Shown: piece after piece, positions 13,440 through 61,580 of the stretch
Layout of the letters: each line of letters starts with the position of its first letter
Position numbering within the stretch: position 1 is the stretch's first letter
Assembly (NCBI RefSeq): GCF_023055435.1
Contig: NW_025963891.1
Coordinates: forward strand, 9,982,001 to 10,046,000
Direction of reading: 5' to 3'
Source of the DNA: Haliotis rufescens
Taxonomy: Eukaryota
Length of the DNA stretch: 64,000 nt
Position numbers and translations under genes: made by a program
Notes under the pieces: model-generated
What the model was told of the DNA's origin: nothing
The model's input: only the letters and a program-made list of their open reading frames with translations
The model's database searches: none

Positions 13440-16400
13440 CTCAAGCTAGGGTGACAGCATGTGCAACTCGACACTAATTAATTTTCCCATATGTCTTTTA
13501 ATGGGTGCGTTTGGCAATTTTGAAGAGATCATTACCCTTTTTAGTTGGTGCTAATAACGCCAATTGCCTGGTTAAAAGTGTCAGACATGTAAAACTGATA
13601 TAGTCAACATGCCTATTCCAATATGCTTAACAACATGTGTTTCGCAATAGCCATCATGTGTATATCGATATTGGCACCCCTTTACATTATATTCTTCATA
13701 ATTTATTTTTAATGCATCAGTTTCTTGTCGTGATGAATAACAATACTATTTATTGCCAAGGACATAATGTCGGCGGTCGTATTTTAAGAGTAAGGTAATG
13801 TGTAATGTGTTCAATTCTGATTTGGAAGCTGCGATAATGAGAGACATTAGAAATTTAACAGAATTCAAAACATCTATGACAGAGAATAATCAGTTTCACA
13901 TTTCTACCGAAAACATAAGGTGTAACAGCTAAAATAATGATGAATATTACATGTATGCAATCGACTATAGACCAGACACTCCAGTGATTGATATTATGAG
14001 CAGTGAGCCACGTCGTCGGGGTACGACGCCAGGCTGTCAACCAAGACAACAAGCCTGACCATCCGTCCCTATTAAAGTAAGTGCCAGCAGGTGTGAGATT
14101 TTCTACTTTAATATGTATTGTATTTCATCCTTACCTAATCTGAAAGTACTATGTTTTTACTCTGACGATTGCAAACTATGACGTCATCATAAGGAGAAAT
14201 GACAAAGTTCAGCTTTTCTTGTTTGAAGATGTTCACGATTGAATATGCCTGTGAGATAACAGAACATTAAGCCCCACTACCAATTAGATGTACACATATC
14301 AAAATGGCATTAAATTTTGAAAGAAATGGCTGAATAATGGACATAAATTTCAGATTTCAGCGTTGTCAGAGTTGAAAGATCAAATAAAGGTCAGAACCTA
14401 ATACATGGCAAAAGCGAACACACATGTTGAACCCCACTACTAACTACATACATACATACATACCAAATTTCGTTTGAGTAATAGCCAGAAATAGGTTTTC
14501 CAATATGATTTGCGTAGTGGCCATATTGAAATCGGATTTCAACCTTTCCTTTAGATTCAGGTGGCATCATTTGTTGGAAGTTTCAACTTCATTGGCCCAG
14601 TGGATTCTGAAGAAATTATGTTTGTATTGGTAGGAAATGCAATTTGAGAGAATTTGGGAGCATGGTCAAAGGGATGAAAACATATATTATTATTAAAAAA
14701 GGAACACATATATGTTGAGTCCTGCAACCTTGTTGAGTACCATGTTTTATTACATTTTGTCCAGATTTCCCACAAGCCCTTACAGCTTTCATTGTAGTCA
14801 GCCCATGATGGAAACAAATACAACAACTCGCACACAAAAAAAGGAAGTTTATGTTGATGCACCCTACTACCAGCTTCCCATGCACCATCATTCATTCCAT
14901 TTTAAACATAATGGCTAACTGACGAAATAACGCATGGCGCCTGACGGACAAACACTCCTCTGTTTAAAATATGTCGCAAATATCCAACCATTCACGTGAA
15001 CTACGTCCTAGGCGTCTTTATTATTGTGTGTATAGCGAGGATTGTATATACGGAAATGGGCGGAGATGATTTCATTTACCAAACTGTTATTCTTGCACTT
15101 TTGACTTACAGTAATGTAACGTTTCGAGATCAAACTGAGCATCGCTTCATGTCGTTCTAAATGCTTCTTATGCTGGGCCAACAGATAAGGTTGGACAGCA
15201 CTGACACTGATACTATCTGGAAACTGTTAATTCTATTCCTTGTTGTTTCAATATCATAATTGTATCGTGAAAGACTTAAATATGAATTTATTACATGATG
15301 TTTATTATCATTTAATTTAATTCACTACAGAACGCCTTCATTGTTCTTGAAATGACGTTTAACCAAAGTGGTCAACGTGTGACACATCAAACTGACACTC
15401 CTTGTGGATCGATGCTCATGATGTCAATCACTGGATTGTCTGGTCCAGACGCGATTGTTTAGAGACTGCCATCATACAGCTGGAATAATGCTGAGTGCGG
15501 AGTTACACAACAAACAAACAAAAAACAGAGTCATCGCGAAAAACACTTAAGTTGGTGTGTAATAAAAAACATCAATCACGAATCATAAGGACGAACTTCT
15601 GAAATGCTGAAAACTCCTGCGCTTCTCAATAACTCTTTTATCTATTAGTGTGAATTCATATTTCTCCCTGGATGTTTTATCTTAAACTGCCTGAATACTT
15701 TGCGTTCATGCCAACATCCTTTCCTACAGTGTACGTGATCACTGTTGGGTGACCAATACAACAGAAAATGTCTTTCCACTAATGCAAACGTAACTGCCAT
15801 ATACACTTTAATAGAATAGAGCAACAAAAACATGTATGTGATCTAGATTTCAAGTGTGGGTGTGCAAGTGACGGTGGTTCAGAGNNNNNNNNNNNNNNNN
15901 NNNNNNNNNNNNNNNNNNNNNNNNNNNNNNNNNNNNNNNNNNNNNNNNNNNNNNNNNNNNNNNNNNNNNNNNNNNNNNNNNNNNNNNNNNNNNNNNNNNN
16001 NNNNNNNNNNNNNNNNNNNNNNNNNNNNNNNNNNNNNNNNNNNNNNNNNNNNAATTGAGTCTGGGCCAGACAATCTAGTGATTTGTATCATGAACATCGA
16101 TCCACTTAATGTGGGATACGATATGACGCATCAACCAAGTCAGTGAGCCTGACCTCCTGATCCCGTTAGTCGCCTCTTTCGACAAGCATAGTCTCCTCTT
16201 ACGACATGGGTTGCTGAAGATCTGTTCTAACCCGTATCTTCACGGCGGATTCCAAAACTATGTATATCATCGTCATATTAGTGATAGACAATTTCCTTTA
16301 GTTGGTATGGCCTTGTGCTAGTATGGCAGTAAGCCCACTGAGATGCCATGCTGCAGTATAAAATGTCTCCCTACTCAAAAACAGTATACTGACTAAGCGG

Positions 16401-42211: not shown

Positions 42212-45200
42212 TTACATCCGCCTCAAGAAAAGATTCTGAGAAAAATATAAGTCTTTAGTTGAGTCATGCATGTGCATCAGTGCCAAAATGTATTACTTCA
42301 TTGTAAACTTCTATAACTTAATATCCATTAACAAGGTAGACACAATTTTATAAATAACATCTTCTTTTATTCTGTAAAAAGCGACGTTTCGGTATAGATC
42401 ATTTTACCGTTGTCAAGCAAGACTGAATGAGGGACATAGTACAGAATATATATAGTAGGTGGAGGATTAACAGTAATAACAGTTGCATATGTGAGTGGGA
42501 TAGCATAGGTATGTCTGTACCGAAACGTCGCTTTTTACAGTATTAATGAAGTTGTTATCCATAAAATTGTGTCTGCCTTGTCATCCGTCAACTTCTAAGT
42601 AATGCCTATCAAACAATTTAATATCCAATAGCATAGGTCAGGCTTGAGATAAAATTCATTCACAAGAAATATCATATTTAAGATAGTTCCTAATGATATA
42701 GACATTTTGTAAATGTGTTTATTACTTTGATATGGCTCAAAGGGATTGATGCATACCTTGCTCAATGGTGATCATAACTTGTAGACTTAAGTATTTCATT
42801 AATATCTGAAAAATATATAAATGACATCAATTGCAGGACAAACTATCATATCAAACCATTTCCTAAATATGTAGTCACAGTTGAATCTGTCTAGTCATAT
42901 GATGACAAACTTGATTCCTGTAGTCTGAGACATTGATATTGGATAGCATGATTGTTTGGCGTTAACATCACATAAAATCATTTATTGGGAGAAATGCTTT
43001 AATTCAGATCAATTGTCTGTATGATTATAATACAATTTTCTATATTTCTAATGTTTTTTATTTTGTTCTTACAATGCTACCTTTTGAAGGAAGTCTGTCA
43101 CCAGTGCAGTAGATGGATTCCCTTTAACATTCTCTGGGCATAATGTGTCGAGAGTGCAAAGGCCCTCGGGATCCTAAAGCTCGTGACGATTGGCATCAAG
43201 ATTACAACATTAAAAAATACTTCAGATTAAAAAAGAATAACATAATTTACTAATCTGTCTAACTAAACAATAGACCGAAATGTCAANNNNNNNNNNNNNN
43301 NNNNNNNNNNNNNNNNNNNNNNNNNNNNNNNNNNNNNNNNNNNNNNNNNNNNNNNNNNNNNNNNNNNNNNNNNNNNNNNNNNNNNNNNNNNNNNNNNNNN
43401 NNNNNNNNNNNNNNNNNNNNNNNNNNNNNNNNNNNNNNNNNNNNNNNNNNNNNNNNAGTAACAGGTTGTTGTACCTCGAATTAGTAGTGGATAATTTGTT
43501 CATTTAAGCCCGTGAAAAAGTCATGATACGTGTGATATCCAATTCTTATATGAATGGAATCGATAAACTGTTAACGTTATTCTTACCTCGTTTTCAACAA
43601 TGTAATCCAGAACCCCGGGTATCAGAGCACGGACCTCAGCAGTACACTAAAACAAAGTAAAGAAGTCAGCAGTTGAATATTGTTTTAAAACAACTTTAAC
43701 AACTACGTTGTGCATTATCAAATTAATTGGCATTCGCTACATATGCATTTATACGTGCTATGGAAGTCTTGCATCATTTCGTTTCAGAGCAAGTTATTTC
43801 TAAGAAGACAAAAGAAATAATGCAAACCAATATGTGTGGCTGAAACAATATGTGTGTCCAGGTATCATGTAGCCACTGTATGTTTAAGAAGAAGCAACAA
43901 CAAGTTTATTCAGGGACTACAACGATCTTAGCTGCTTAAGATTGGTCCGGACCAATTGTAAGTTTTGATTGTAACTTACAGTGATCTTAGCCGGCAATCG
44001 CTTTGTGCAAGTGGATGACGATTGTAGCCGAAGCCTAAGATCGCGATCTTAAGGATTTACAATAATTGTAGCACTAAGATCGCTTTGTGCAAGTGGACCC
44101 AGTTATCATATAGCCACTGTATGTTTAAGAAGAAGCAACAACATTAACATGAAAGCCAATGTGTTTGACTGAAATACGTATTTCAATAGAAAGAAAAGTG
44201 GAACATAAGAACAAATAGGTAAACACTTACGACTTCCTCCAGAAAATATGCAGAAAGTGGACTGCAAATTATATAGTCGAAATACGCCTCCACTTGCTCC
44301 TGCACAATACATTAGACACACTTGTCATTTAGGGCCTAATCCAACAACAACATTAGTAATGATTGCTTATTGGAATTATACACGTTGACATGTGCCCTGT
44401 GCGATAATTGGACATGTTGTCTCGGTAACTATTTGCGATGGTCTACACAAAGTTTATCAGACCAACAACTTGTCAAGCTAATTCGATTAAAATGCAATTT
44501 ATCGACAGTAAGGAGGTAAACAAACTTATTCACGCTCATTCAATATGAGCGTTTTACCTTCACTTCATCTGTGTTCAAACTCGCAATGAAATTATCAACG
44601 ACTTCAATGCAGTCTGTACAAGCATCATCACCCTGGAAGAAAACGGAACCATTTTGTGTATGTTTATGAAACGTAAATAAGTTTGGTTTAATAACGCATT
44701 GAATTAAGGACCATTGTGTAAAAACAATCAACAATTATTTTTGCAAGTTTATATCAGAAACACAAATACCCCAATGATCCAGGTCAACATAACTAGCTAA
44801 TCATGGTTGTATCATCATCTGCGAGTGTCTATTGAATGGAGAGGCGCATTTCTCGGAGGTTTCAATTTTTCGTTTCGCTTAAGCATCGCCGTCCAGTATG
44901 TGCTAATTACCACTCGTGTCTTTCGTTCAGTTCCAATCCATCATGACATAATGATACTGACAGACTGATTCACACAATTCATTACCGTTTTGACATTGAC
45001 ATTTGTTTACTTCGTGAAGTGATTCCATGGGTTTTCAGGACACAACATTGCAAAACTACACAAGACCTCCGGATCCTGAAGCATAATTTTGTTTGTACAA
45101 TCACATATTTTAAATGTACATTTTAATCAATACCAAAAATTTCTTTTAAAATATCGATTCATATGTATCATACAGAAATATTATTTTCTTCCTACTATTC

Positions 45201-46805: not shown

Positions 46806-48521
46806 TTATAGGTGGAAGTATGGCATGAAACATGAAAAAATACTCAAAATCCCAATTCTGCCACTGTTACTAAAACCTTCTCATAAGAGACCTGCGAAGT
46901 TCCCACTTAGAATAGGTCTTCAGCAACCCATGGTTGCCGCTAAAGGCGACTATGCTCGTCGTAAGAGGCGACTAACGGGATCAGGTGGTCAGGCTCGCTG
47001 ACTTGGTTTGATGCATGTCATCGTATCCCAATTAGGTTGACAGATGTCCATCATGTCTTTAACTGGATTGTCTGGTCCAGACTCGATGATTTACAAACCG
47101 CCGTCATATAGCTGGAAAATTGCCGAGTGCGGTGTTAAACATCAAACAAACGACTAATTAGGCTATGGCCAAACAGACAGGAGCGTGCTGATACCATCGA
47201 TGCCAATTTGGTACCGTTTGATATCACAGAGAGTATCACAGTCATATCAGTCAAACACCAAATGACTCACATACATGCCATTGAAAATAGAGTGACGACA
47301 TTAAGAATATTTTTGCATCACTTTATCACTTTCATATTTAGAATTCGTCATACGTTCAATGAAAAAGTTAACAAGGGCGAACGAATTATTTTTGTGTGTT
47401 AAACACTTAGGTGCACCTACCATACCTTTACAGAAAAATATTCCCTAAATGTAGAAAGCATTTGGTTGTTGGTTAAGGCTACTGTGAACATATGTACTGT
47501 ACGTTTGATAAATATCAAGTCATGTTTACACATATACACATGAGTCACTGCTGTGCGTTTCCCCATAGTATCACAGTTCTCATTTATAAGCATCTGAATC
47601 TAACTATAAAGAGCTTAAAAGCGATTTTGGCTTTGATCATACTGAATAAAAGGTAAAAATGCAAACACATTAACTGTTCAAACATACCATCTACGTTTGC
47701 AGTATGTCACATCTAAGAACCGTTGTTTATTCAGCACTTTCCAGATGCCACCAACGTTAGCTTTGTTATAACCAGTGTTCAGGGAAATATTTATCACGTT
47801 ATTAAAAGGGATGTTCGTGCTCTAATTTGACAACATGTCACCCGGAAGAAAATGTGATAAAGCTTTCTTTTGGCATGGTTCAAGCGTCCAGGGCTGTCAT
47901 GATAAAAGTTACAGCACTTCTAAATCATACCTTAATTTCAGTGGGGAAGGTACACAGCGCGGATTAACGGGGTTCCACTGTACCTCGTCTTAGAAATTAT
48001 TATACACATGCTTAGCTACCAATGTGATCTAAAAGCGATTAATCATCTTTCAACAAAAGAAAACACATTGAAGAATATGAAGTTTAAGATCGAGTAGAAA
48101 CATACAATGTCATGTAAGAGTGAGTGCTGTCGGAAGAGCAGGACACGCCCTTTTCGCGAACACCTGACGTCATCACTGATGACATTAGTACACGTGTCAT
48201 GCATACGCCTTGAAACCAGTCTACCCTTTTGTACATAGTGAAAAAAAAATTCAAATCAAGAATATTAGAAATCGTTATGACCAGAGAGCTACTGATATTG
48301 TCACTGACAATAGTATTTTCCGCAAAACTAAAATGAATATTTGAACTATATTGGTGGCTGCAACTAACAATTTGACGCTCCCCACGAGTGGTTATTAAAC
48401 ATTTGTTTAAAAGGGAACGTTAACACAAAAATCAAGATATAAATCCAAATTGAGCACATTTAACTGGCAATCGAATATGATGCGCCTGACAAAAAATACT
48501 GCTGATAACGTCATGTAAAGT

Positions 48522-48876
48522 GAGGTGAGTTGAGGTGAAATTGGGTTTAACGTCGCGTCCAAGATTATTGCACTTATATAGCGACGTGCATGCACGTGTG
48601 TGTGTGTGGCTGCTTGTACTAGTACGGACTGATGCCGATTTATAGTGCTAGCTCACTGAGATACCATGCCGCAGTTTAACATGAATACCCCACTCAGACA
48701 CAGTATACTGACTCCGAGCCGACCAGTCCTTGTTTTAGCCCCTTAATGCCGAGCGCCAGACAGGGTAACAACAAGTACAATCTTTTAACGTCTTTTTGTA
48801 TGACGCGGCCCGGGATCGAACCCCGGACCTTCCGCTCTCCGGGCGGACGCTCTACCACAAGACCACGGAGGCGGTC
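48522..48876 (-). mobile_element. Full-length tRNA-derived SINE with Meta-domain-like core
   Basis: A box TGGTCTTGTGGTAGAGC, B box GGTTCGATCCC, core gactggtcggctcggagtcag...cagtgagctagcactataaa, TSD gtcatgtaaagt on both sides. Related fragments at ~4930-5085 (each unit) and ~53760-53925. Confidence 0.8.
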
Positions 48877-49394
48877 GTCATGTAAAGTATTTACGCAATT
48901 CATAAAAAAGGATTTATGGAACAAAATGCCTATATTTGACTGATTGAGCTAATAGTATCATTTCATTTCAAAATGGGATCGAACTCCTGCAACGAGATTC
49001 GATTTACTGGACATATTGCAATCAAAATGTAAATTAAACGTGTAAAATGCATAGTGGCATGTATTCTTACAGCAATATAATGAAGGTAAATTTGATCTTT
49101 TTTTAAAAGCATGACTTTTACTATTTTGAGCAAATCAAAACACATCCTATCTGCTCTTCATTTGCTGCATGGTGTCCCAATGTTATCATATTCCAGGAAT
49201 AATCCTGTCAATGCTGTTCAACGTAAACTCTAACTCTGTTTGGATATGTCACAATGCGAGGCAATGTTTATCGACGTATTTAGAGTGTTATCCAAAGCGC
49301 TCGTTCATGACTCACATTAGCTGACAGATCACCTTATGCATCATATGCTTCTAGTCACCACTGTTCAGACAAGGGAGACGAGTCAGAGGAAACA

Positions 49395-50582
49395 ATGGCT
49401 GTGAAAGTGTTCAAACGTGTCACGAGCATTGTTTTCGGCACTATTGTTCTCTTACAAATTCACGGGAAGACGCTTGCTGGACAAGGGGGACTTTTAAAAC
49501 ACCTTCTTGAAAGCTACAATCAAGAGGTTTTTCAAACAAATGAAGTGATGGATATTGGAATATATTTGACCGTATCCCAAATAGGTGAACTTGATGAACA
49601 GCGACAATCATTCTCCACCAGTGGATGGTTCACGTTCCAGTGGGTGGATGATTCCTTAAAGTGGAACGTTACAGATTTCAATGGTACAGAGCAAATATAT
49701 CTGTCTAGTCAAACAATCTGGACCCCTGATTTGGTGCTCTTAAATTCTGCCACAGGAATTAAGCTTTTCAGTCACCAACAAGTACCTGTAAGCGTGGAAC
49801 ACACCGGATTAGTAGTATGGTACCACGGTGATCTCTTCCAGAGTCAGTGCGACTTTGATATTGTCCATTTTCCGTTTGATACTCAGATTTGCAATTTTGT
49901 TCTATCAACCTGGGTTACAACGTCGGACAAAGTTAAGTTAACACCTCTTCCGCATCAGTTGGATATCTATACTACGGGTGAGAATGGATTATGGCAATTA
50001 AGAAATATAACAACATTTCTAAAGGAACATCAGTACCCTCGACTTATTGTAGAACTGACCCTGAAACGCCGACCATCATATTACGTATACAACCTGATAA
50101 TCCCCATCACGCTTCTATCTCTTCTCAGCTCCCTGGTGTTTGCTCTGCCAATGGAGTACGGTGACAAAGTGGCTCTGTCCATGACGGTTCTACTCTCCTT
50201 CGGCGTGTTCCTGACTCAGATGACCACAAACATGCCAAAAACGTCCCGACAGACGTCCTACCTCACCATCTACCTGACCGCTCTGCTCACCCTCAGCTCC
50301 CTCTCTGTGGCCATGATGATCCTCATTCTCAGGATCTACAAGCGTCAAGGAAAGGTGCCCAAAGTGCTGCAGAAATGGGTTGTTCTCTGGAAATGTTTTT
50401 CGTCAAATAAAAAGCAGACTGCGGCTGTGGATCAAGATCATGCGGATGACGTAAGTACAGAGGATCCATCCTGGAAGGATGTGTCTGCCACGCTTGAAGC
50501 CATGTGTCTGAGGTTATTCCTCTTCATGAATATCAGTCTCGGCATCGTTCTCTTCACTGTACTCATAGTATTAACAAATTGA
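49395..50582 (+). CDS. Intronless Cys-loop ligand-gated ion channel subunit, nicotinic acetylcholine receptor-like, non-alpha (395 aa)
   Basis: Signal peptide, WTPDL (loop A region), Cys-loop CDFDIVHFPFDTQIC (C-x13-C with FPFD), pre-M1 LKRRP, four hydrophobic TM segments, M2 GDKVALSMTVLLS. No vicinal Cys-Cys in loop C. AATAAA follows near 50804. Confidence 0.96.
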   Translation: MAVKVFKRVTSIVFGTIVLLQIHGKTLAGQGGLLKHLLESYNQEVFQTNEVMDIGIYLTVSQIGELDEQRQSFSTSGWFTFQWVDDSLKWNVTDFNGTEQIYLSSQTIWTPDLVLLNSATGIKLFSHQQVPVSVEHTGLVVWYHGDLFQSQCDFDIVHFPFDTQICNFVLSTWVTTSDKVKLTPLPHQLDIYTTGENGLWQLRNITTFLKEHQYPRLIVELTLKRRPSYYVYNLIIPITLLSLLSSLVFALPMEYGDKVALSMTVLLSFGVFLTQMTTNMPKTSRQTSYLTIYLTALLTLSSLSVAMMILILRIYKRQGKVPKVLQKWVVLWKCFSSNKKQTAAVDQDHADDVSTEDPSWKDVSATLEAMCLRLFLFMNISLGIVLFTVLIVLTN

Positions 50583-51579
50583 CTGTTGACTGGCTTTACA
50601 GTTTCATGCAACAGGGTAACCTTTGGTTCCCTGGGGTTGATTTTATCATGAGATGAGCTTCTTCCTATCCCATCTGGATGAGAATTCTTAAGGTTTGCAT
50701 TTGTAGACAGAGTTAATATCCTTTGACAAGCACAAGGGATACGTCTCGCAGACTGATTCCAAATGTGTCGGTGCTTGACAACCAACGGCACAAACTGCTG
50801 TCTAATAAAAAATGGCGCGCCTTTGATCTCGCCCTAAACCATGTTAGAATTCAATGGAACCTAGTGTATGTTTATGGAATCTCCGATTAAGTGATCACTG
50901 GAGCTTATATATATGAACAATTATTGTAAATAGCAAAAAAAGGTAGGTGTCCGTTTTCCGGAAACCTTCCAGATACCTTCCCACTTTGAATCCTACCTGG
51001 AAATATTCCGGCAACCTTTGTTGTTCAATTTAGTGTGAAACACATACAAAATATTTTTGAAAATTATCAAGAAGACTGAAAATATCCCGAAGGTTTCCGA
51101 AAGGTATTCAGATGCAAGTTTTGTTCTTGTTTTGTTTCTTGTAAATAATGTTAGCCTAGGCATATCTGATAGCTGCAGTAATATTTCGTGACATTTTAGT
51201 TCGAAGTATCCCCTGAAAGCTGAGATTTCTGCGCATGTACTTTTGGAGAAGACAATTTTCAAACAACATTCATTAATATTTGTTTTGGGATCTTTAGTGT
51301 GTTTAATAAACGAAAGGAATTTCTAGTAGACGTAAGGACAAAAGGATGCACAGTTGTTAGTCGGCCTTAGTAAGTCGAATGTTTAGCAATTTTGGAAAAA
51401 GATTAACGCCTCTATGGGAAACAGTAAGAGTAGTGGTTACTGTAATTTTGTGGATTATTTTAGCAAATTGGCTAATCTAATTGGTATGGTGTTTATCTAT
51501 AACGGGTGCCCGGGTATGGTCGGGTAAAAGGGTGGTGGGTACCCGGGTAGTAAATTTAGACTCGTCCCAGCCCTAGTTT

Positions 51580-52010
51580 ACACCCTCTGGTAGTTTTATA
51601 GAATGTCAAAGAACTTTATCTGAACAGGCAATGAAAGCTTTATTTTCATTGTATAGAGTTATCAATAGTATATTTCTGTTTATATTCAGTACGAGTTATT
51701 TCAATCACTAATTCCACCCATATTGTGTTATGATTGTGAGGTGTGGGGTTTTACAGAGGCTTATGCAATGGAAAGATTTATTAAAAAGATATTAATTGTT
51801 AAATTATCTACAGCATAGACATATGTTTATGGTGAATTCGGGGTACTGCCATTGATAAGTGTGCGGTTTGTTAGATTTGTTAAATATTGGATGAAAATCT
51901 TAAAGTGTGATCCAAATAGATATAATAGTATTGTGTATAAAGCTATTTTAGAAATGATGTTAAGTCGTCCTAACGTAGAAAGTTAGGCATTTCTGGTAAA
52001 AAAAATATTA
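51580..52010 (+). mobile_element. Degenerate non-LTR retrotransposon (LINE) ORF2 fragment
   Basis: FTPSGSF...KALFSL...LFQSLIPPILCYDCEVWGF...YGEFG, post-RT region of LINE ORF2, with stops and frameshifts. Confidence 0.7.
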
Positions 52011-54065
52011 GTTTTGGAATCATCACAGAAACATCAGTGTCAACTATCCCGGAAAGGTGCAACAATACCATCGTTGGAGATTAGGAATGTGCCAATGGTG
52101 AGACATTGCCTTATATGTGATATGTGGATGTTGCGGTTGAAACTAATTGTTTATGGTTCGTCATCCCAGGCAGTGAGTACATCAATCGTGTTCCCGTTTT
52201 ACTGGACCTTTGTTTCCTCAAGTGAGCAAAATGCACACACACTGGAATCTTGCCTCCCGGGGTATTAGTTTGCAGGACAAGGGACCTACAAGGAAAGATG
52301 GGACCCTGGGACTTATGTGTACCTGTGAGGTGTCACTCGTTTTTAACTCAAAACAGAACACGACAGTCACGTGTTCACTCTACAAGAAACTGCCTTATAG
52401 AGAAAATTGTGTCATGCTTCACCAGGGCCACAAAGACATCCATACCACCGGGGCTTGAGATAAACCCCTGCATTATTCAGCTGTCAGTACAAGAGGTCAC
52501 TACAAGCCCCTTTTAATTGTCAAACCTGACCAACAAGACCATAGTTGTTTCCCCTAGGACAATCATCTTCGAGATACAATTAGTCCAGATTTAGAAAGTT
52601 GCACCCATCAACGTGGAACAGATTGCCACTGAAGTAAAACAGCACAAGCTGAAGAAGGAGAACATATCTCATAAGGTTTCTGAGGAACAGAAGAAGCTGA
52701 GTGAAGAGCTAATTCAGAAATACGGCGACGTGTTTTCTACCGGAGATTTAGATTTTGGCCACTACACTGTTTTTTAGGGATTGCCAGATCGTACACCAAT
52801 CAAGGAAAGAGATGGGCGCATACCACCATCTATGTTTCAGGAGTTGAAGGAATATCTCCAACAGTAACGTGCTTCTGGAATCATCAGACGTTCTTATATT
52901 ATAGCCCATGGGCCTCTTATTTAGTCCTTGTATGCAATGGTGATGGATCTTTTGGTTTGTGTATTGATTTTAGATCACTCAACCAGCGCACTGTAAAGAT
53001 GCCTACGCTTTACATGTTGAAGAAATCTTCAAGAGACTAGCAGTTTTCTCACTGTTATGGACATGCATTCGGGTTACCATTAAACAGAGACAGGGGAAGC
53101 TTACAAAGCAGGAATCGCCTTTGCAGTTGGACTTCTAGGGTTTTACGAGTACAATTTAAGCTAATGTCATTTGAACTCGTAAATGATCCAGATGGAATAT
53201 ATGTTTGGAAGTCTTCACTTGGAAATCTGCCTGATTTATCTGGATGATCTCATCGGGTTTCCTGATTTTAAAGAGCACTTGAAGGTTAAATAGACTTGGG
53301 GTCAAACTCAAGAATCAGCCATCAAGCAACTGAATGGCGCTTTGTCAAAGCGACCTTTTGTTGGATATGAGACTTATGGCTTTCTTTTGAAGTGCACACA
53401 GATCCACATTCGCAAAATTAGGTGCAATCCTCTACCTAGAAAAAGAAGGACAAAAGAGGGTCATCGCTTATAACGGCCAATAAAGCAATAAAGCCGAGAA
53501 GAACTGTCCATCAGACAAGTTGGAGTTGCTGGAATTATAAAGGGCAGTGATTGACTACGACCACCTCTACAGAAATCAGTTAACTGTAATAACGGACAAC
53601 AACCTTTCACAAACGTCTTGAGTTCACCAAAATTGGATGCTACAAGACACAGGTGGATTGTAGCTCTTTCCTTATTCAACTTTGATATTAAGTATCATTC
53701 AGGTAAATGTAACGCAGATGCTGGTATGCTCTTCGGGTTGTCACAAGAAGACGAGAGAGAGGTGAGGTGAGGTGAAATGGGGTTTAATGTCGCGTCCAAG
53801 ATTATTGGACTTATATATCGACGTGCATGTACGTGTGTGTTTGTGTGGCTGATTGTACTAGTCCGGACTGATGCCGATTTATAGTGCTAGCATTTTTACA
53901 TGAATACCCTACTCAGACACAGAAAACTGAGAGAGAGACGATGGTTGCTACATCTGTAAAGGTGATCTGCAATACTTGTCCAACATCCAGAGTTTATGCT
54001 TCGCAGATGAACTTATTGCAGACGTTGAACACAGGAACAACACAACTTGTTTCACTCTAGTCACT
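52010..54065 (+). mobile_element. Degenerate Ty3/Gypsy LTR-retrotransposon pol relic
   Basis: Fragmentary frames: KYGDVFS.GDLD.GH, RIPPSMFQELKEYLQ..GIIRRS.SPWAS, DGSFGLCIDFRSLNQRT (RT); LGAILY..KRVIAY, TDNN, KLDATRHRWIVALS.FNFDIKY.SGKCNADA (RNase H). Confidence 0.85.
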
Positions 54066-56384
54066 CTACAGGAAGACTATCTTGATGTTCATATTTTGCA
54101 CTTCATCTCGGTGTTTTTTATGGTGAACCGCAGGGTTATTGGAGTAATATTAACAGGCTTTTCAGGTGCCTGTCGTGAACCTGACATACAGAATATAAGG
54201 CTAGTGTTGCTATGAACGAAGTAAAACAGTAATATGTGAAAGATGTGTAAAATACTTACTAAGTATGGTATATGTTGAGTGTTTGTATTATTGTATTACA
54301 CCTGTTTTCTGCATTATTTCAGAACCTCGTGAATACACATGTCAGAAAGAAATTTCTTTCCTCTTTTATTCAATCTATGCCAATCATGTGTCTGCGTATA
54401 ATATTTTGTCGTATTTCTAATTCATGTATTCCACACATGGTAGTGCGGCTGTGTTTATAGTATATTTATTTATTCAGGACTATTCACTGCATTTTTTCAT
54501 TGTATGAGGTTCTGCCTTGCGTCCCTGAGAATAAGTATAATATATATTATGTTGTATTATTTATGCATGATTTATTAGAATGTGTTTTATCTAGGAGGAT
54601 TTGTTAAAGTCTGATTGTTTGTCAGTTATTTTGCTTGTTTGTTTGTTATTTAACGCCGCATTCAGCAATATTCCAGCTTTATGACGGCGTTCTGTTAATA
54701 ATCGATAATTACAAAGCAGTATTTATTTTTTCCTTTAAGTAATGACATTGGTTTGGCTTTGTCATGGCAATGTTTTACACAGACACTTTCTTGAGGTAAC
54801 ATAAGAATAAAATAATACTACATTATCCCTACGGATATTTGTGTTACATCATAGAGAAATAAGAAATAGGTCAATGAAATAAGTTAAATACACCAACACA
54901 CATAAACACTATGACAAAAACGATGTAAAAGCACCAATCAACAATAAGTGAGAAAAGAAAATGGAAATATGGGAGGCATAAATTAAAAGGTTCTCAAGTT
55001 AGACAAATGTGGTAGATCTAGACAATAATAACACATGGTTTCATAGTTAAGGAAACGAATACTGACTGGTACGAATGATTGACGAGCTCAATTTTGTGTC
55101 CTTTGTATTTGTTTAAAACAGACAGATCCCCACACCAGCAGTGGATCGGAAAGTGAACGTTAACATACTTTGTATAAAGATATAAAACAAGGATGGAAAT
55201 AGTGGGATCAATATTAAAATCTTAAGCGACAAGGACATTATAATCTTTGTCGGACCTTTTTATGTACCAAAAACATGTGTATTTACTTCAGGGAACGTAT
55301 CAATAGGAGAAATTGTTGCTTACAGTGAGACTAATCTTTATGTACATTGTACTTGCTTATTATTTTCTTATATTAAAAGGATGATAGAAAATGTGTCACA
55401 TGTAACAGAAATACGAGTACAAATGACTAAAATCTATATTGTTCATAATGATGAATTTATTTCATGAATGCTAAAATCTTAGAATCGTAGAACAGCATCA
55501 TCTCTACGACAGACAAGATTGATACTGGTACGATTGATCATTGACTTAATATTGTGCAGCTTGTTAGTTGTTTGTGTAAACCCAATTTGATTGCAAACAC
55601 TGATTGACATATTGTCTTATAGTTTTCCAAAGAAGAAGCATTGAATGATTGTTTACAGAACTTAATTGAACGAAAATTGTTTTAATGGTACCAGTTGTTT
55701 TATATCTCTTTCAAAACAAAACCAGACACATTATCATGGCCACACGCACGAACACTGAGTTGGCTAAAATAACTCATAACATCATTTTTTGTTATCACCA
55801 AATTTTGTTTTGTATCTTTAATACTTTTCACTCGCGAAGGTTTTTGTCGTTATTTGGTTTCGAAACTTTAGCTCTATACAAAGATCTTATAATTTCATGC
55901 ATAACAGTTTTTTTAACAGATTTAACTTTCATGATCGCCGCTACAAAAAAAACTCGCTTTGTAATCCAGGGCTTATTGTTGGGATAGATCTTGATTGTCT
56001 TAACAGGTACAATAGAGCCAACGCAAAAGGTTATATGTCACTGTGGGTCAAGGTCAAAATATAAAGATGTAAAACTCAGAGTAAACCTATAAAAGGCTAT
56101 AAAAGTTATCCCATATAAAATGAACCTACTCCATCAAAGATACATTACATTATTTCAATGATTTTTGTTGGCAGCCTATACCGAGACAGCCTACTACCGT
56201 AACGGCAACTCGTATACAATATACTACTCCAAAAAAATAAAAGAACATCCAATGGTTTCGAATTACCGTAGTTAAGCTGTCATACCATGATAGATTAACT
56301 GGAGTAATATGTAGGAATCGGATGTTCTTTAACTTCTTTTCGTTAGTGTGTGTCAAAACGTTACTCATTTTATGACCTTCCACC

Positions 56385-56648
56385 GACCCGTGAAGATTCC
56401 CGTGTAGAATAGGTCTTCAGCAACCCATGCTTGCCGTAAAAGGTGACTATACTTGTCGTAAAAGGCGACAAACGGGATCGCGTGGTCAGGCTCGCTGACT
56501 TGGCTGATGCATGTCATCGATCCCAATTGCGTGGATCGATGCTCATGATATTAATCACTGGATTGTCTGGTCCAGACTCGATAATTTACAGACCGCCGTC
56601 ATATAGCTGGAATACTGCTGAGTGCGATTAAACAACAAACCAACAAAC
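56385..56648 (+). mobile_element. SINE with GTCGTAAGAGGCGACTAA (Nin-domain-like) core
   Basis: Consensus gacccgtgaaga...cttcagcaacccatg...ggattgtctggtccagactcg...gctggaata...aaacaacaaacc. Other copies: 46889-47150 (+), 38163-38417 (-, unit-4 specific), 4648-4860, 16053-16247, 27241-27457, 38565-38762 (-), plus partials at 2250-2352 and 4083-4195. Confidence 0.75.
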
Positions 56649-57172
56649 CATCTGACGCTCACTATTCTAAAGAAAGAACAATGGTAGGTTGATTAAAATC
56701 TACGTTATGATAGTTGCACAGAAAATCGTTTAATCCTCAAAACTAAAATGAACCTATTTGATTACATCGATGTCTGCAACCACTTATTTGACGCTCCCTA
56801 CCAGTGCTTATCACACATTCATTAGGAGAAGCTATTTACACAATAATCAAGACATGAAGTCAGTCTCTGTGTACTTACTTTGTTTCTACAAAGAGAATCG
56901 ATTCACCAGACAATTTGCAGTCACAAACTATTAAACGTGTATTAAATATATCGGCATGTATTCTACCAGTTATATCAAGAACGGTTACTTTGATCTTTTC
57001 TTCTCAGTAGCATGGCGTTTAGCATTTTAGGAAATCAAAATACATTCTCTTCTATTTATTTGCTGTATGTTGGTCATATCATATCCCAAGGACTAGAAAG
57101 CTAGTTGTAATTCAGTCAATATTTATCAACGTTAACTGTGTTTACTACGTCATCGATGTGGGGAAATGTTAA

Positions 57173-59269
57173 CCCCCTGGATGCCAAGTTATATTTCTGG
57201 CGCACATTTTCATAAGATTTGAAAAGTGGACGTTGTAAGAAAATTCGGTTTACTTGGTCTACATCCGACTATAAAATGACGCAGGGATGTAGAATATCAA
57301 ATTTCCATTTTGTTGGTATAAAAATGAACTGGTAGGAAAACAGAAAGTGCTAAGTTTTGCCCGAGAGTTTGTTATACGTAAAAAAATCCAGCTAATTTCG
57401 CCACTTCTTATCGAATACCAATAAAATTACTTTCCAATGATTTATTTTTTATTTAACATCTTGATGGAAACTGTGAGCTGACAATATACTGCCTAATGTC
57501 TGAACGACGTGATGATAAATGAAATGGATGTGTACGCTTATGGTGGACGTTGTACATTCGATTTGAAAAAAAGCTTGCCATAAAGGAAGAAAATCGATTC
57601 AGCTATGACGTTAAAGACGACAGGCAGGTATACACAAGCACAAATAAAAAGGGGCACAACCCTGCTATGCTTTGAACTAGTCCATTCTAACTCAGATGAG
57701 AGTTTGCTGTGCATCAAAATAATAAGGTTTTGTATTTTCTGGGTTCACTATGTACCAATCTATACGAAACACAGGCATTGATAATGAAACCGTGAACGTT
57801 TAGGTATTGTAAAAAAATCGTAAGAAATGATGAAATCGTACTACATAAAAAGGGAAGTAAAGGGGAAAGCGATGTCCCTATCTAGAGGGTAAATTAGTCT
57901 TCAGATTGCCCCACTGACAAAAACAAAAACACAGACTATTTCAAAACAAGCAAACATATTTTTAATATAGGCCATGTGTTTGTTCATTATCATGTGTTTA
58001 TTTTTCTTCGTCTCATATATAAGAGATGTAATAACCGGCGACGATATAACCGGAAAGGATTTTATAAAAACTATCCCATATAGCGGAAAGTTCTCTTCGG
58101 CGTTAGTGTTTGCGTAATTTCGAAACCACTCAAAACGATTCCGGGGTTGTTGTTGTCCCACTGTCCCACTGTCTTTTTAGGGGTGACCGACGCTCTATGG
58201 ACACACCATGATTTCAATGAATAGAAGTATGAACAAACATGCAGTCATGTTTTTTTTTATTTATATCGTATTTGATTTCACATGATTTCCATATCACAGC
58301 ACATGAACATGATTGAATTTCACAATCAATATTCTAATATCACAACAGTTTTTAATGTCTCAACATCAAATTTAAAATACAACTCGACAATTTATAATAA
58401 ACCAACATGACATTTCATGATCATCACAAACGTACAAAATTGGCCACAGCATCTGCAAATTCAATTGCTGACTTTCTTCCCTCACGTAAGTGTCTCTTTT
58501 CTGCATCAAGTCTGGTCTCAAGATGTCGATACTTAGATCTCCTGGGTCTAAGCATACCCCCACCTACAAGCTGCAGGATACTGGCCTTGGTGTAGGCTTG
58601 TTCTGTCCTAAAAAAGTCATTAATTCTGTAGATGTTGGGGTGGGGACTGCCCATGATGGAGGTGAGCTTGAAGTGCCAGCCCTCTACGTGGTTGGTCGTT
58701 CTTGGGCCGACGGTGTCGTGGTTATTCCAGGTGCTTCGTCCATGATCGCCCTCCACCAAAATTTCAGTCACATCGTCAGTAAATCGGAGAACTCTGGCAT
58801 CATGGAGAGGGGCACTTTCGTTACGGCTATACTCATAACACGCAGAAGTGTACATTAGTGAACACGGTCACTCATATTATAAGAGCCTGGCATAAGTGCT
58901 AATTGGTGAACACGGTTCGATCTGGCAGGTGGGTGAACTTAACTCACCCACCAGCACCCCTACCAATAGTGTACCCAAACCAATCACTCTATTCTTCTAC
59001 GCCTGACTGGGTTTGTTGTTATAAGAAATGTTGGGAAACCGGGGGCACCCGATTAAATACATGACAGATACCCGTGATCATTAATATCCTTTTTTTTGTA
59101 ATTGCATTCATTTTCAATAAATGTGCTTCGGTCGTCATATCACAGACCAGATAATTTGCCTCAGAATTCACAACTGTGAATTGTGTGAATGATGTATTTT
59201 AAATATTATTCGACTTCCATGTGAGGGTTGATGAGAAAGGATACATATATCCCTGTGCCATACAGGGGG
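57173..59269 (-). mobile_element. DNA transposon with TTAA target duplication and CCCCCTG termini, carrying a MULE-type transposase C-terminal fragment (58424-58855)
   Basis: ttaa|ccccctggatgcca at 57169 and tgccatacaggggg|ttaa ending 59273 are inverted repeats (16/18 match including TTAA). Internal ORF has W...RTTNHVEGWH..L......HPNIY..I..F..EQ, the motif C-terminal to Mutator-like DDE domains. The paralogous empty site is near 49267. Confidence 0.75.
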
Positions 59270-59394
59270 TTAATGGAAGTGTTAAGAGCGTTATCCGCAA
59301 CACTCTTTCATGACCTGCATAAACCGATCGATCACCTTTATTATAAGCTTCTAGTCACCACTGTTCAGACAAGGGAGACGAGTCAGAGGAAATA

Positions 59395-60594
59395 ATGGCT
59401 GTGAAAGTGTTCAAACGTGTCACGAGCATTTTTTTCGGCACTATTGTTCTCGTACAAATTCACGGGAAGATGCTTGCTGGACAAGGGGGACTTTTAAAAC
59501 ACCTTCTTGAAAGCTACAATCAAGAGGTTTTTCAAACAAATGAAGTGTTGGATATTGGAATATATTTTTCCCTATCCCAAATAGTTGAACTTGATGAACG
59601 GCGACAATCAGTCACCACCAGTGGATGGTTCACGTTCCAGTGGGTGGATGATTCCTTAAAGTGGAACGTTACAGATTTCAATGGTATAGAGAAAATATAT
59701 CTATCTAGTCAAACAATCTGGACCCCTGATTTACTGCTCTTAAATTCCGTCAAAGGAATGAAGCTTTTCAATGACCCACAAGTACCTTTATGCGTGGAAC
59801 ACACTGGATTAGTAGAATGGGACCACGGTGATCTCTTCCAGAGTCAGTGCGACTTTGATATTGTCCATTTTCCGTTTGATTCTCAGATTTGCAATCTTGT
59901 TCTATCAACCTGGGTTTCAAGGTCGGACAAAGTTAAGTTAACACCACTTCCGCATCAATTGGATACCTATACTACGAGTGGGAATGGATTATGGCAATTA
60001 AGAAATATAACAACATTTCTAAAGGAACTTCAGTACCCTCGACTAATTGTAGAACTGACCCTGAAACGCCGACCATCATATTACGTCTACTACCTGATAA
60101 TCCCCATCACGCTTCTATCTCTTCTCAGCTCCCTGGTGTTTGCTCTGTCCACAGAGTACGGGGACAAAGTGGCTCTGTCCATGACGGTTCTACTCTCCTT
60201 CGGCGTGTTCCTGACTCAGATGACCACAGACATGCCAAAAACGTCCCGACAGACGTCCTACCTCACCATCTACCTGACCGCTCTGCTCACCCTAAGCTCT
60301 CTCTCTGTGGCCATGATGATCCTCATTCTCAGGATCTACAAGCGTCAAGGAAAGGTGCCCAAAGTGCTGCAGAAATGGGTTGATCTCTGGAAATGTTTTT
60401 CGTCAGATCAAAAGCAGACTGCTGCTGTAGATCAAGATCATGCGGGTGACGTAAATGCCAAGGTGAGCACAGAGGATCCATCCTGGAAGGATGTGTCTGC
60501 CACGCTTGAAGCCATGTGTCTGAGGTTATTCCTCTTCATGAATATCAGTCTCGGCATCGTTCTCTTTACTATACTCATAGTTTTAACAAATTGA
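59395..60594 (+). CDS. Intronless Cys-loop ligand-gated ion channel subunit, nAChR-like non-alpha, paralogue 2 (399 aa)
   Basis: Same architecture as 49395-50582 (CDFDIVHFPFDSQIC, GDKVALSMTVLLS). About 90% amino-acid identity by manual alignment, with a 4-aa insertion in the M3-M4 loop. Confidence 0.96.
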   Translation: MAVKVFKRVTSIFFGTIVLVQIHGKMLAGQGGLLKHLLESYNQEVFQTNEVLDIGIYFSLSQIVELDERRQSVTTSGWFTFQWVDDSLKWNVTDFNGIEKIYLSSQTIWTPDLLLLNSVKGMKLFNDPQVPLCVEHTGLVEWDHGDLFQSQCDFDIVHFPFDSQICNLVLSTWVSRSDKVKLTPLPHQLDTYTTSGNGLWQLRNITTFLKELQYPRLIVELTLKRRPSYYVYYLIIPITLLSLLSSLVFALSTEYGDKVALSMTVLLSFGVFLTQMTTDMPKTSRQTSYLTIYLTALLTLSSLSVAMMILILRIYKRQGKVPKVLQKWVDLWKCFSSDQKQTAAVDQDHAGDVNAKVSTEDPSWKDVSATLEAMCLRLFLFMNISLGIVLFTILIVLTN

Positions 60595-61137
60595 CTGTTG
60601 ACTGGCTTTACCGTTTCATGCAACAGGGTAACATTTGGTTCCCTGGAGTTGATTTTATCATGATATGAGCTTCTTCCTATCCCATCTGGATGAGAATTCT
60701 TAAGGTTTGTATTTGTAGACAGAGTTAATATCCTTTGACAAGCACAAGGGATACCTCTCGCAGACTGATTCCAAATGTGTCGGTGCTTGACAACCAACGG
60801 CACAAACTGCTGTCTAATAAAAAGAAGGCGCGCCTTTGATCTCGCCTTGAACCATGTTAGAATTCAATTGAACCTAGCAATTTCTAATAGACGTAAGGAC
60901 AAACAGGATGCACAGTTGTTAGCTGGCCTTAGTGAGTCGAATGTTTAGCAATTTTGGAAAAAGATTAACGCCTCTATGGGAAATAGTAAGAGTAGTGGAT
61001 ACTGTAATTTTGTGGATTATTTTAGTAAATTGGCTAATCCAATCGGTATGGTGTTTATCTATAACGGGTACCCGGGTATGGTCGGGTAATAGGGTGGTGG
61101 GTACCCGGGTAGTAAATTTGGACTCGCCCCAGCCCTT

Positions 61138-61580
61138 GTTTACACCCTCTGGTAGTTTTATAGAATGTCAAAGAACTTTATCTGAACAGGCAATGAAAGC
61201 TTTATTTTCATTGTATAGAGTTATCAATAGTCATAAGTATATTTCTGTTGATATCCAGTACCAGTTATTTCAATCACTAATTCAACCGATATTGTGTTAT
61301 GAATGTGAGGTGTGGGGTTTTACGGAGGCCTATGCAATTGAAAGATTTATTAAAAAGATATTAAGTGTGAAATTATCTACACTATAGGCTTATGTTTATG
61401 GCGAATTCGGGGTACTACCCTACTACCAAGTGTGCGTTTTTTTAGAATTGTTAAATATTGGATGAAATCTTAAATAAAATAGATAAGTTAGTATTGTGTA
61501 CAAAGCTCTTTTAGAAATGATGTTAAGTCATCCTAATATAGAAAGTTGGGTTCTTTCTGGTAAGAAAAATATTAAACCAA
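61138..61580 (+). mobile_element. Degenerate LINE ORF2 fragment (duplicate)
   Basis: Second half of ORF 60932-61387: FTPSGSFIECQRTLSEQAMKALFSLY...LFQSLIQPILCYECEVWGF. Confidence 0.7.

Follow-up and report, generated by a model that had tools for sequence, protein, structure and literature searches.

What kind of protein do two neighbouring intronless genes of the red abalone, Haliotis rufescens, encode, how did the pair arise, and to what might its products respond? The genes, here called A and B, lie in a stretch of 64,000 nucleotides, the window (C113:9982001-10046000 of a 1.33 Gb assembly; C-coordinates below refer to contigs of that assembly). We conclude that A and B code for non-alpha subunits of a pentameric Cys-loop channel, that both genes are intact and kept by selection, and that they are recent copies within a Haliotis-only branch. 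Moreover, their sequences make it probable that the ligand-binding pocket was retuned after duplication and that the agonist is other than acetylcholine (ACh).

Only three open reading frames (ORFs) of at least 150 amino acids (aa) are present in the whole window, and A and B are two of them; thus, they are not chance ORFs. Each spans the region from a signal peptide to the end of the fourth transmembrane (TM) helix, M4, and is therefore a coding sequence (CDS) without an intron, single-exon status here referring to the CDS, as the untranslated regions (UTRs) could contain introns. The two genes are made up as follows.

49395-50582, plus strand: gene A CDS, single exon, 395 aa plus stop (ORF, Pfam, alignment to nicotinic ACh receptors (nAChRs), AlphaFold).
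49479-50072, plus strand: gene A extracellular ligand-binding domain (ECD), aa 29-226 (alignment to alpha4 and alpha1, residue table).
50073-50342, plus strand: gene A M1-M3, including the pore helix M2 (alignment, AlphaFold).
50343-50579, plus strand: gene A intracellular loop (~47 aa, partly disordered) and M4 (AlphaFold).
59395-60594, plus strand: gene B CDS, single exon, 399 aa plus stop (ORF, Pfam; recent paralogue of A).
59479-60072, plus strand: gene B ECD, aa 29-226 (residue comparison).
60073-60342, plus strand: gene B M1-M3, pore motif as in A (A/B alignment).
60343-60591, plus strand: gene B intracellular loop (~51 aa, 4 aa longer than in A through an insertion) and M4 (A/B alignment).

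The two proteins are identical at 354 of 399 positions (89%). Both match the Pfam families Neur_chan_LBD (E 2.8e-41 for A and 7.5e-40 for B) and Neur_chan_memb (E 2.2e-14 and 3.6e-14, respectively) beyond the curated cut-offs, and the best solved relatives are nAChR subunits, i.e. alpha4 (E 7e-45), Torpedo alpha1, alpha7 and beta2 (E 1.9e-40). An AlphaFold model of A, computed with 35 relatives as input, has a mean predicted local distance difference test score (pLDDT) of 78 and consists of a beta-sandwich followed by four TM helices (residues 227-250, 257-279, 285-315 and 360-394) and a further helix at 323-336; pLDDT falls below 50 at residues 338-354 in the intracellular stretch. The model superposes on nAChR subunits with Z ~29 over ~350 residues. 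In total, A and B are, as judged from their predicted proteins, complete Cys-loop receptor subunits of the nAChR/5-HT3 branch and of non-alpha type. A preliminary description of this DNA had proposed two single-exon Cys-loop subunits in tandem with a very short M3-M4 loop; the uninterrupted ORFs, the Pfam matches and the loop lengths listed above bear this out.

We read the residues of the binding site from an alignment to human alpha4 and Torpedo alpha1 together with a residue table of paralogues. The Cys-loop is intact (C152-x13-C166 with HFPFDTQ), and its two cysteines are the only ones in the ECD of A. The loop-A sequence is PDLVLLN in A and PDLLLLN in B; Leu116 stands at the position of the alpha-subunit Tyr93. 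The Trp residues of loop B (Trp173) and loop D (Trp78) and the second Tyr of loop C (Tyr214) are retained. Loop C itself (NITTFLKE[H/L]QYP) is devoid of the Cys-Cys and falls 5-8 residues short of its length in alpha subunits; Tyr190 therefore has no clear counterpart, and its position is occupied by H212 in A and L212 in B or is deleted, depending on the alignment used. Thus, three of the five aromatic-box residues are retained (L116, W173, H212/L212/deleted, Y214, W78), and with the vicinal Cys-Cys absent and the box incomplete, A and B lack the defining features of alpha subunits. The preliminary description had anticipated the missing Cys-Cys, the shortened loop C, the replaced loop-A Tyr, the two retained Trp residues and, on these grounds, the non-alpha assignment, and all of these agree with what we found.

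The pores of A and B carry G256-D257-K258 at positions -2' to 0' and Leu267 at 9', and have no Pro-Ala-Arg motif of the anion type. Asp257 replaces the Glu present in most relatives and is a conservative variant of the cation-type G-E-K. This is a cation-type signature, from which we infer a cation-permeable channel.

The two pockets differ in loop E, where residues 133, 141 and 143 are Ser, Val and Tyr in A, and Cys, Glu and Asp in B. The triad is S/I/Y in gene D and S/T/Y in H. asinina, and C/E/D in gene C (genes C and D are neighbouring members of the same array, described below). With C/E/D, the complementary face of B and C gains a free Cys together with two acidic residues. The unpaired Cys133 gained by B and C corresponds to window positions 59791-59793 in B. 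As a separate observation, B has lost the glycosylation sequon at N96, where NGT of A is replaced by NGI (window 59680-59688).

The loop-E triad aligns with H116, Q124 and T126 of alpha4, positions that set agonist sensitivity at complementary faces. This brings in the possibility that A and B are accessory, beta-like subunits of ACh-gated heteromers in neurons, muscle or non-neuronal cells, their loop-E differences tuning ACh and choline pharmacology. In line with such a role, A and B retain Trp78 and the whole of loop E, the losses are all on the principal face, which beta-type subunits do not use, and the three loop-E positions that differ between A and B are those aligned with the alpha4 residues. 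Potential partners are encoded in the same genome: canonical alpha-type genes are matched only exon by exon (exons of ~190 aa), and two of these exons (L036, and L038 at C1:56.86 Mb) encode loop B as GSWTYDG and loop C as Y-A-C-C. On the other side, the intracellular loop is short and is without most of the region that in canonical neuronal subunits serves trafficking and clustering, more than 100 such genes seem excessive for an accessory role, and the phylogeny described below gives no orthology to conserved beta subunits and places the pair in a Haliotis-only clade of the Cys-Cys-less expansion. Altogether, we regard the accessory role as unlikely.

A six-frame search of the assembly gave 105 scored matches among 436 candidates; almost all of these matches span the protein nearly from end to end in one open frame, and they are grouped in tandem arrays spread over many contigs. 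With the Pfam ligand-binding domain (LBD) model as query, 150 scored matches were obtained, of which ~105 span the whole domain in one frame. The H. rufescens genome thus contains at least 105 single-exon genes of this kind. In 27 of 27 abalone single-exon paralogues examined, the loop-C Cys-Cys is absent, and all 27 have G-(E/D)-(K/Q/R) and Leu at 9' in the pore. Because the Cys-Cys is lost throughout, the features listed in the preliminary description belong to the whole expansion: they are present in the pair, as stated there, but are not peculiar to it. A separate observation concerns the canonical genes: at C1:75013711-75416665 (L036, L037 and L039), at least seven tandem matches to a canonical alpha-type exon lie within 0.4 Mb; tandem amplification thus extends to the multi-exon, ACh-competent alpha7-like genes of this genome.

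A word-index protein search and a profile of 15 paralogues retrieved 11 and 14 proteins, respectively, nearly all from Haliotis. As these were too few for a tree across taxa, we used a full HMMER search, which returned 11,679 relatives. Identity of at least 48% was reached in Haliotis proteins only; the next best matches, with 34-38% identity, were Haliotis paralogues and proteins of Patella, Plakobranchus, Babylonia and the bivalve Mactra. In an IQ-TREE tree of 46 proteins, with the octopus and squid chemotactile receptor (CR) sequences left out, A, B and C form a clade (support 100/100) whose sister group consists of D and an H. asinina protein (100/100). This group is part of a Haliotis-only subfamily of 15 rows (100/100) with three subgroups, each of which contains H. 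asinina or H. rubra members as well as recent duplicates specific to one species. The sister group of a Haliotis clade of 21 rows is a clade of Patella, Babylonia and Plakobranchus proteins (95/91), and octopod and bivalve sequences lie outside this Haliotis plus gastropod grouping. Finally, all Cys-Cys-less proteins form one clade as opposed to the Cys-Cys-bearing ones (100/99). By this tree, A and B belong to a Haliotis-only branch of a mollusc-wide expansion of Cys-Cys-less, single-exon nAChR-like genes. A phylogeny had been proposed as a check, and the pair did not group as orthologues of conserved beta subunits; likewise, the lineage-specific, intronless tandem expansion suggested beforehand is confirmed by the number of single-frame paralogues, their arrays and the tree.

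To understand how the pair arose, we compared the window and the DNA downstream of it with itself. Three units of ~10-11 kb each were found, with genes A, B and C starting at positions 49395, 59395 and 70537 in window coordinates extended past the window end. The units are 84-94% identical, intergenic DNA included. Two unit cores lie in the window, and the third unit, with gene C, follows unit 2 beyond its end.

49266-50864, plus strand: duplication unit 1 core (promoter-proximal DNA, CDS A, 3' UTR), 93% identical to 59269-60877; further blocks of unit 1 extend to ~57541.
59269-60877, plus strand: duplication unit 2 core (around gene B); the unit runs on past the window end.

Gene D, downstream of C, is a fourth and more distant member of the array, with 73% nucleotide identity. 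Two receptor pseudogene fragments (L032) lie just upstream of D, at C113:10066535-10067040 and C113:10067760-10068195; the match at C113:10066686-10067039, within the first of them, has 67% protein identity and contains stop codons. Between C and D, the promoter-proximal and 5' part of the unit also occurs as an orphan copy, at C113:10059170-10059750 (L034). The pseudogene and 5' fragments in the array are traces of birth-and-death turnover. Moreover, a sister array of eight genes with 48-54% aa identity is located 2 Mb upstream on the minus strand (C113:7909158-7994441; L005-L012); it holds near-identical quadruplets (L008-L011) and a broken copy with five stop codons (L012), and its member L006 is identical to an H. 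rufescens RefSeq protein.

Because whole units of ~10 kb were duplicated together with their flanks, the pair is the product of segmental tandem duplication. An origin of the duplicates as haplotigs or as another assembly artefact was ruled out by the 6-16% divergence with indels, by the third and fourth copies and by depth, which in independent DNA runs rises over the genes to 2-3 times the level in the flanks. As a hallmark of retrogenes, we looked for a poly(A) tract after the gene and its 3' UTR and found none, and the sole target-site duplication seen belongs to a short interspersed nuclear element (SINE) upstream of gene A and not to the gene itself. The pair had been described beforehand as possibly part of a retro-derived family; as it was made by duplication at the DNA level, this description does not hold for the pair, and retroposition could apply only to a remote ancestor of the family.

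A and B differ by dS 0.071 and dN 0.047. Among the A, B and C pairs, dS is 0.045-0.072 and whole-gene dN/dS 0.56-0.66; pairs against D have dS ~0.65 and dN/dS 0.38-0.41. Split by domain, dN/dS among A, B and C is 0.82-1.30 in the ECD and 0.13-0.28 in the TM part (Fisher p 0.02-0.06 per pair). The same split was found in an independent recent triplet, L005-L007 of the sister array (ECD 0.73-0.89, TM 0.08-0.29). The constraint on the pore indicates that A, B and C are functional, with a ligand-binding domain that is free or driven to change. Five of the 33 variable ECD sites fall on the 11 listed pocket positions (p=0.02), as do three of the six changes clearly derived in B/C (p=0.002); these counts are small, the comparison is post hoc, and the residue list was drawn from general nAChR knowledge, and the pocket enrichment in the recent copies is therefore suggestive only.

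These values also bear on the possibility that A and B are young redundant duplicates on their way to becoming pseudogenes, with no function of their own. An ECD dN/dS near 1 would fit such decay, as would the pseudogene fragments in the array and the broken copy in the sister array; silent genes, moreover, are reported to be commoner among intron-poor nAChRs (Jiao et al. 2019, BMC Genomics 20:937, PMC6896357), and the transcription evidence given below, i.e. no RNA run found with the genes and poor public models, points the same way. Against decay, the low TM dN/dS holds among the youngest copies, A, B and C all retain open frames of ~1.2 kb, the signal peptide, the Cys-loop and the pore motif, A and B moreover the polyadenylation signal, and the older pair A-D, at dS 0.65, still has a dN/dS of ~0.4. 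We therefore consider decay very improbable.

Altogether, these observations favour the reading of A and B as recently duplicated, pocket-retuned non-alpha subunits. Recent unequal crossing-over of the ~10 kb unit (dS ~0.05-0.07) generated the A-B-C-D array. In the mechanism that we propose, the subunits would form a cation-permeable channel, either by themselves or together with the products of neighbouring genes in the array. With Leu in loop A, no Cys-Cys and a loop C too short to form a cap, the principal face would be unable to hold ACh in the manner of alpha subunits. This degraded face makes it most likely that the agonist is not ACh at a classical alpha site; it would probably be a different small molecule. 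After each duplication the pocket would change and the pore would stay. In the B/C lineage, the change of the loop-E triad from Ser/Val-like/Tyr to Cys/Glu/Asp may have retuned ligand specificity between neighbouring paralogues. The ligand could be environmental, as in chemosensation, or internal, and both are compatible with this mechanism.

Several points weigh against it. The retained loop-B Trp, loop-D Trp and Tyr214 could still allow cation-pi binding of ACh or choline, and A and B, being beta-like, might supply no more than the complementary face beside an alpha partner. How the channel assembles, which ions it selects and how it is gated are all deduced from sequence. An ECD dN/dS near 1 is also expected from simple relaxed constraint, the L008-L011 group of the sister array has no contrast in dN/dS between ECD and TM, and the pocket enrichment has the limits given with its counts. 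Finally, a search of sequencing runs found no RNA run containing the genes. Runs X1, X5, X2 and X3 had been considered as RNA owing to their small size and were rejected; their contigs cover intergenic DNA at depths similar to those of the genes, which identifies them as DNA.

The public gene models are poor, which is compatible with weak or narrowly restricted transcription and counts among the points just listed. The sole model of A (P0001) begins at Met52, and the signal peptide is missing. In model P0014 (L002; C113:10051037-10055224), named 'CHRNA7-FAM7A fusion protein-like', the second half of gene C is preceded by a spurious 5' exon, and the H. asinina model P0002 consists of the TM halves of three tandem genes strung together. 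Exact full-length A, B, C and D proteins were found for none of the four in a collection of 15 billion proteins.

If the ligand were environmental, A and B could be peripheral ionotropic chemoreceptors in tentacle, epipodium, foot or larval sensory cells, responding, for instance, to contact or settlement cues and functionally convergent with the cephalopod CRs. The single-exon genes, their tandem arrays, the lineage-specific birth and death and the pseudogene fragments would all suit such receptors, as would the degraded ACh site and the combination of pocket-focused change with a conserved pore, which is the pattern of octopus CRs (PMC11526382; bioRxiv 2025.03.03.641191); a role of this kind has been raised for divergent gastropod clades in a 2026 preprint (PMC13174522). 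The matches to solved structures speak to this. They were compared using one representative per PDB sequence cluster; CRs were seen only in this clustered library, the rows of an unclustered Foldseek search with re-alignment being taken up by vertebrate nAChRs. The clustered library gave these matches.

Human alpha7: Z 27.7, 28% identity.
Beta2: Z 27.0, 26% identity.
5-HT3A: Z 26.2, 26% identity.
Alpo4: Z 23.7, 25% identity.
Squid CRB1: Z 20.6, 19% identity.
Octopus CRT1: Z 20.4, 24% identity.

When the nearest octopod protein sampled (P0053) was compared with solved structures, none of its 60 best matches was a CR chain, and it lies outside the clade in the tree. Because CRB1 and CRT1 match less well than alpha7, and P0053 has no CR among those 60, the likeness to CRs is an analogy in gene structure and in the degraded site, with kinship not demonstrated. 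The preliminary description had noted a resemblance to chemotactile-type receptors; as kinship, it is not upheld by these values: the two CRs reach 19-24% identity (Z ~20.5), alpha7 reaches 28%, and the nearest relatives are gastropod proteins. In addition to this lack of specific CR kinship, no RNA run containing the genes was found, and for the expanded genes of bivalves the reports concern early development, immunity and stress, not sense organs (PMC6896357). We consequently hold a peripheral chemosensory role of A and B to be rather doubtful. The same applies to its wider form, in which the Haliotis-only G-D-K subfamily, i.e. the A-B-C-D array plus the eight-gene sister array, would consist of independently evolved gastropod chemoreceptors convergent with CRs, perhaps for contact or settlement cues; this, too, seems to us fairly unlikely. 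Tandem paralogues would then gain ligand specificities by changes in loops B and C and in the three loop-E residues, as exemplified by genes B and C with their acidic Glu141/Asp143 pocket.

If A and B do sense a ligand other than ACh, as the pocket-retuned reading proposes, abalone would be a second independent case, after cephalopods, of neurotransmitter receptors turned into ligand sensors, and settlement and feeding cues of abalone are relevant to aquaculture and conservation. An intronless tandem expansion of mollusc nAChRs (PMC6896357) and the chemosensory hypothesis (PMC13174522) were already known, and our analysis mainly extends a published phenomenon to a vetigastropod. What it adds is modest: a Haliotis-only subfamily, corrected full-length gene models, and evidence of pocket divergence with a conserved pore in recent copies. 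The three loop-E positions and the sites in loops B and C are candidate ligand-specificity residues.

The DNA flanking the genes contains candidate signals for expression. A, B and C share a conserved block of ~100 nt ahead of the ATG. Within it, a TATA-like motif is found in B and C and is degenerate in A (CATCATATG), and an AATAAA site present in A and B reads AATCAA in C.

50804-50809, plus strand: AATAAA polyadenylation signal, 222 nt past the A stop (from sequence, conserved in B).
59339-59347, plus strand: TATA-like TATTATAAG, putative core promoter of B, 56 nt upstream of the ATG.
60816-60821, plus strand: AATAAA polyadenylation signal, 222 nt past the B stop (from sequence).

A very-high-copy element of 367 bp occupies window positions 48509-48875, ~520 bp upstream of the gene A ATG. 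Its word depth is 1e5-1e6 in four of four DNA runs, a target-site duplication of 13 bp (CGTCATGTAAAGT) borders it on either side, and towards its 3' end it resembles the head of a tRNA-derived SINE in reverse complement. In runs X2, X3 and X5, contigs join 48508 directly to 48876; thus, either the insertion is polymorphic or only the assembled individual carries it. Pfam searches of the ORFs at 58424-58855 (minus strand, 143 aa) and 60932-61387 (plus strand, 151 aa) and of an ORF in L031 returned no family. The ORF at 60932-61387 lies within DNA that is repeated in each duplication unit (51340-51850 matches 60902-61419), and it and the ORF at 58424-58855 are possibly remnants of mobile elements carried along by the duplication. 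The two runs of N in the window (15885-16052, 168 bases; 43287-43456, 170 bases) are far from the gene pair.

Among known systems, the vertebrate subunits beta2, beta4, delta and epsilon share with A and B the absence of the vicinal Cys-Cys and a shorter loop C, and the similarity of A and B to beta2 is comparable to that with alpha subunits; A and B are not orthologous to these subunits. Vertebrate non-alpha nAChR genes are multi-exon, the intracellular loops of their products are long, and in beta2 the Tyr of loop A is preserved.

Alpo4 of the annelid Alvinella pompejana is an orphan nAChR-like protein that does not respond to ACh or serotonin (eLife 2023, PMC10338036). It is, as are A and B, a lophotrochozoan nAChR-like subunit without the loop-C Cys-Cys; however, Alpo4 has an aromatic residue at every box position (F103, W159, Y199, Y205 and W65), whereas A and B have lost the aromatic residue of loop A, and their loop C is shorter.

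The CRs of cephalopods are non-selective cation channels in which sequence change is focused on the binding pocket (PMC11526382; bioRxiv 2025.03.03.641191). Like A and B, they are derived from nAChRs, are intronless (by report) and have altered ACh-binding residues. Sensory expression and hydrophobic ligands are established for CRs. The 2026 preprint, the text of which does not mention Haliotis, describes a 'CR-like' clade that includes gastropods and suggests that divergent gastropod nAChR clades may serve ionotropic chemosensation (PMC13174522).

The closest parallel is provided by the intronless tandem nAChR expansions of molluscs described by Jiao et al., with 11-120 intronless genes and with retroposition proposed as the origin of the family (PMC6896357); Haliotis is absent from the text of that study. 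A and B share with this expansion the single-exon CDS, the tandem arrays, lineage-specific duplication and divergent ligand-binding residues, and the abalone count of at least 105 genes falls in the range reported for molluscs. The A/B subfamily differs from it in being restricted to Haliotis, and the pair differs in having arisen by segmental duplication and not by its own retroposition.

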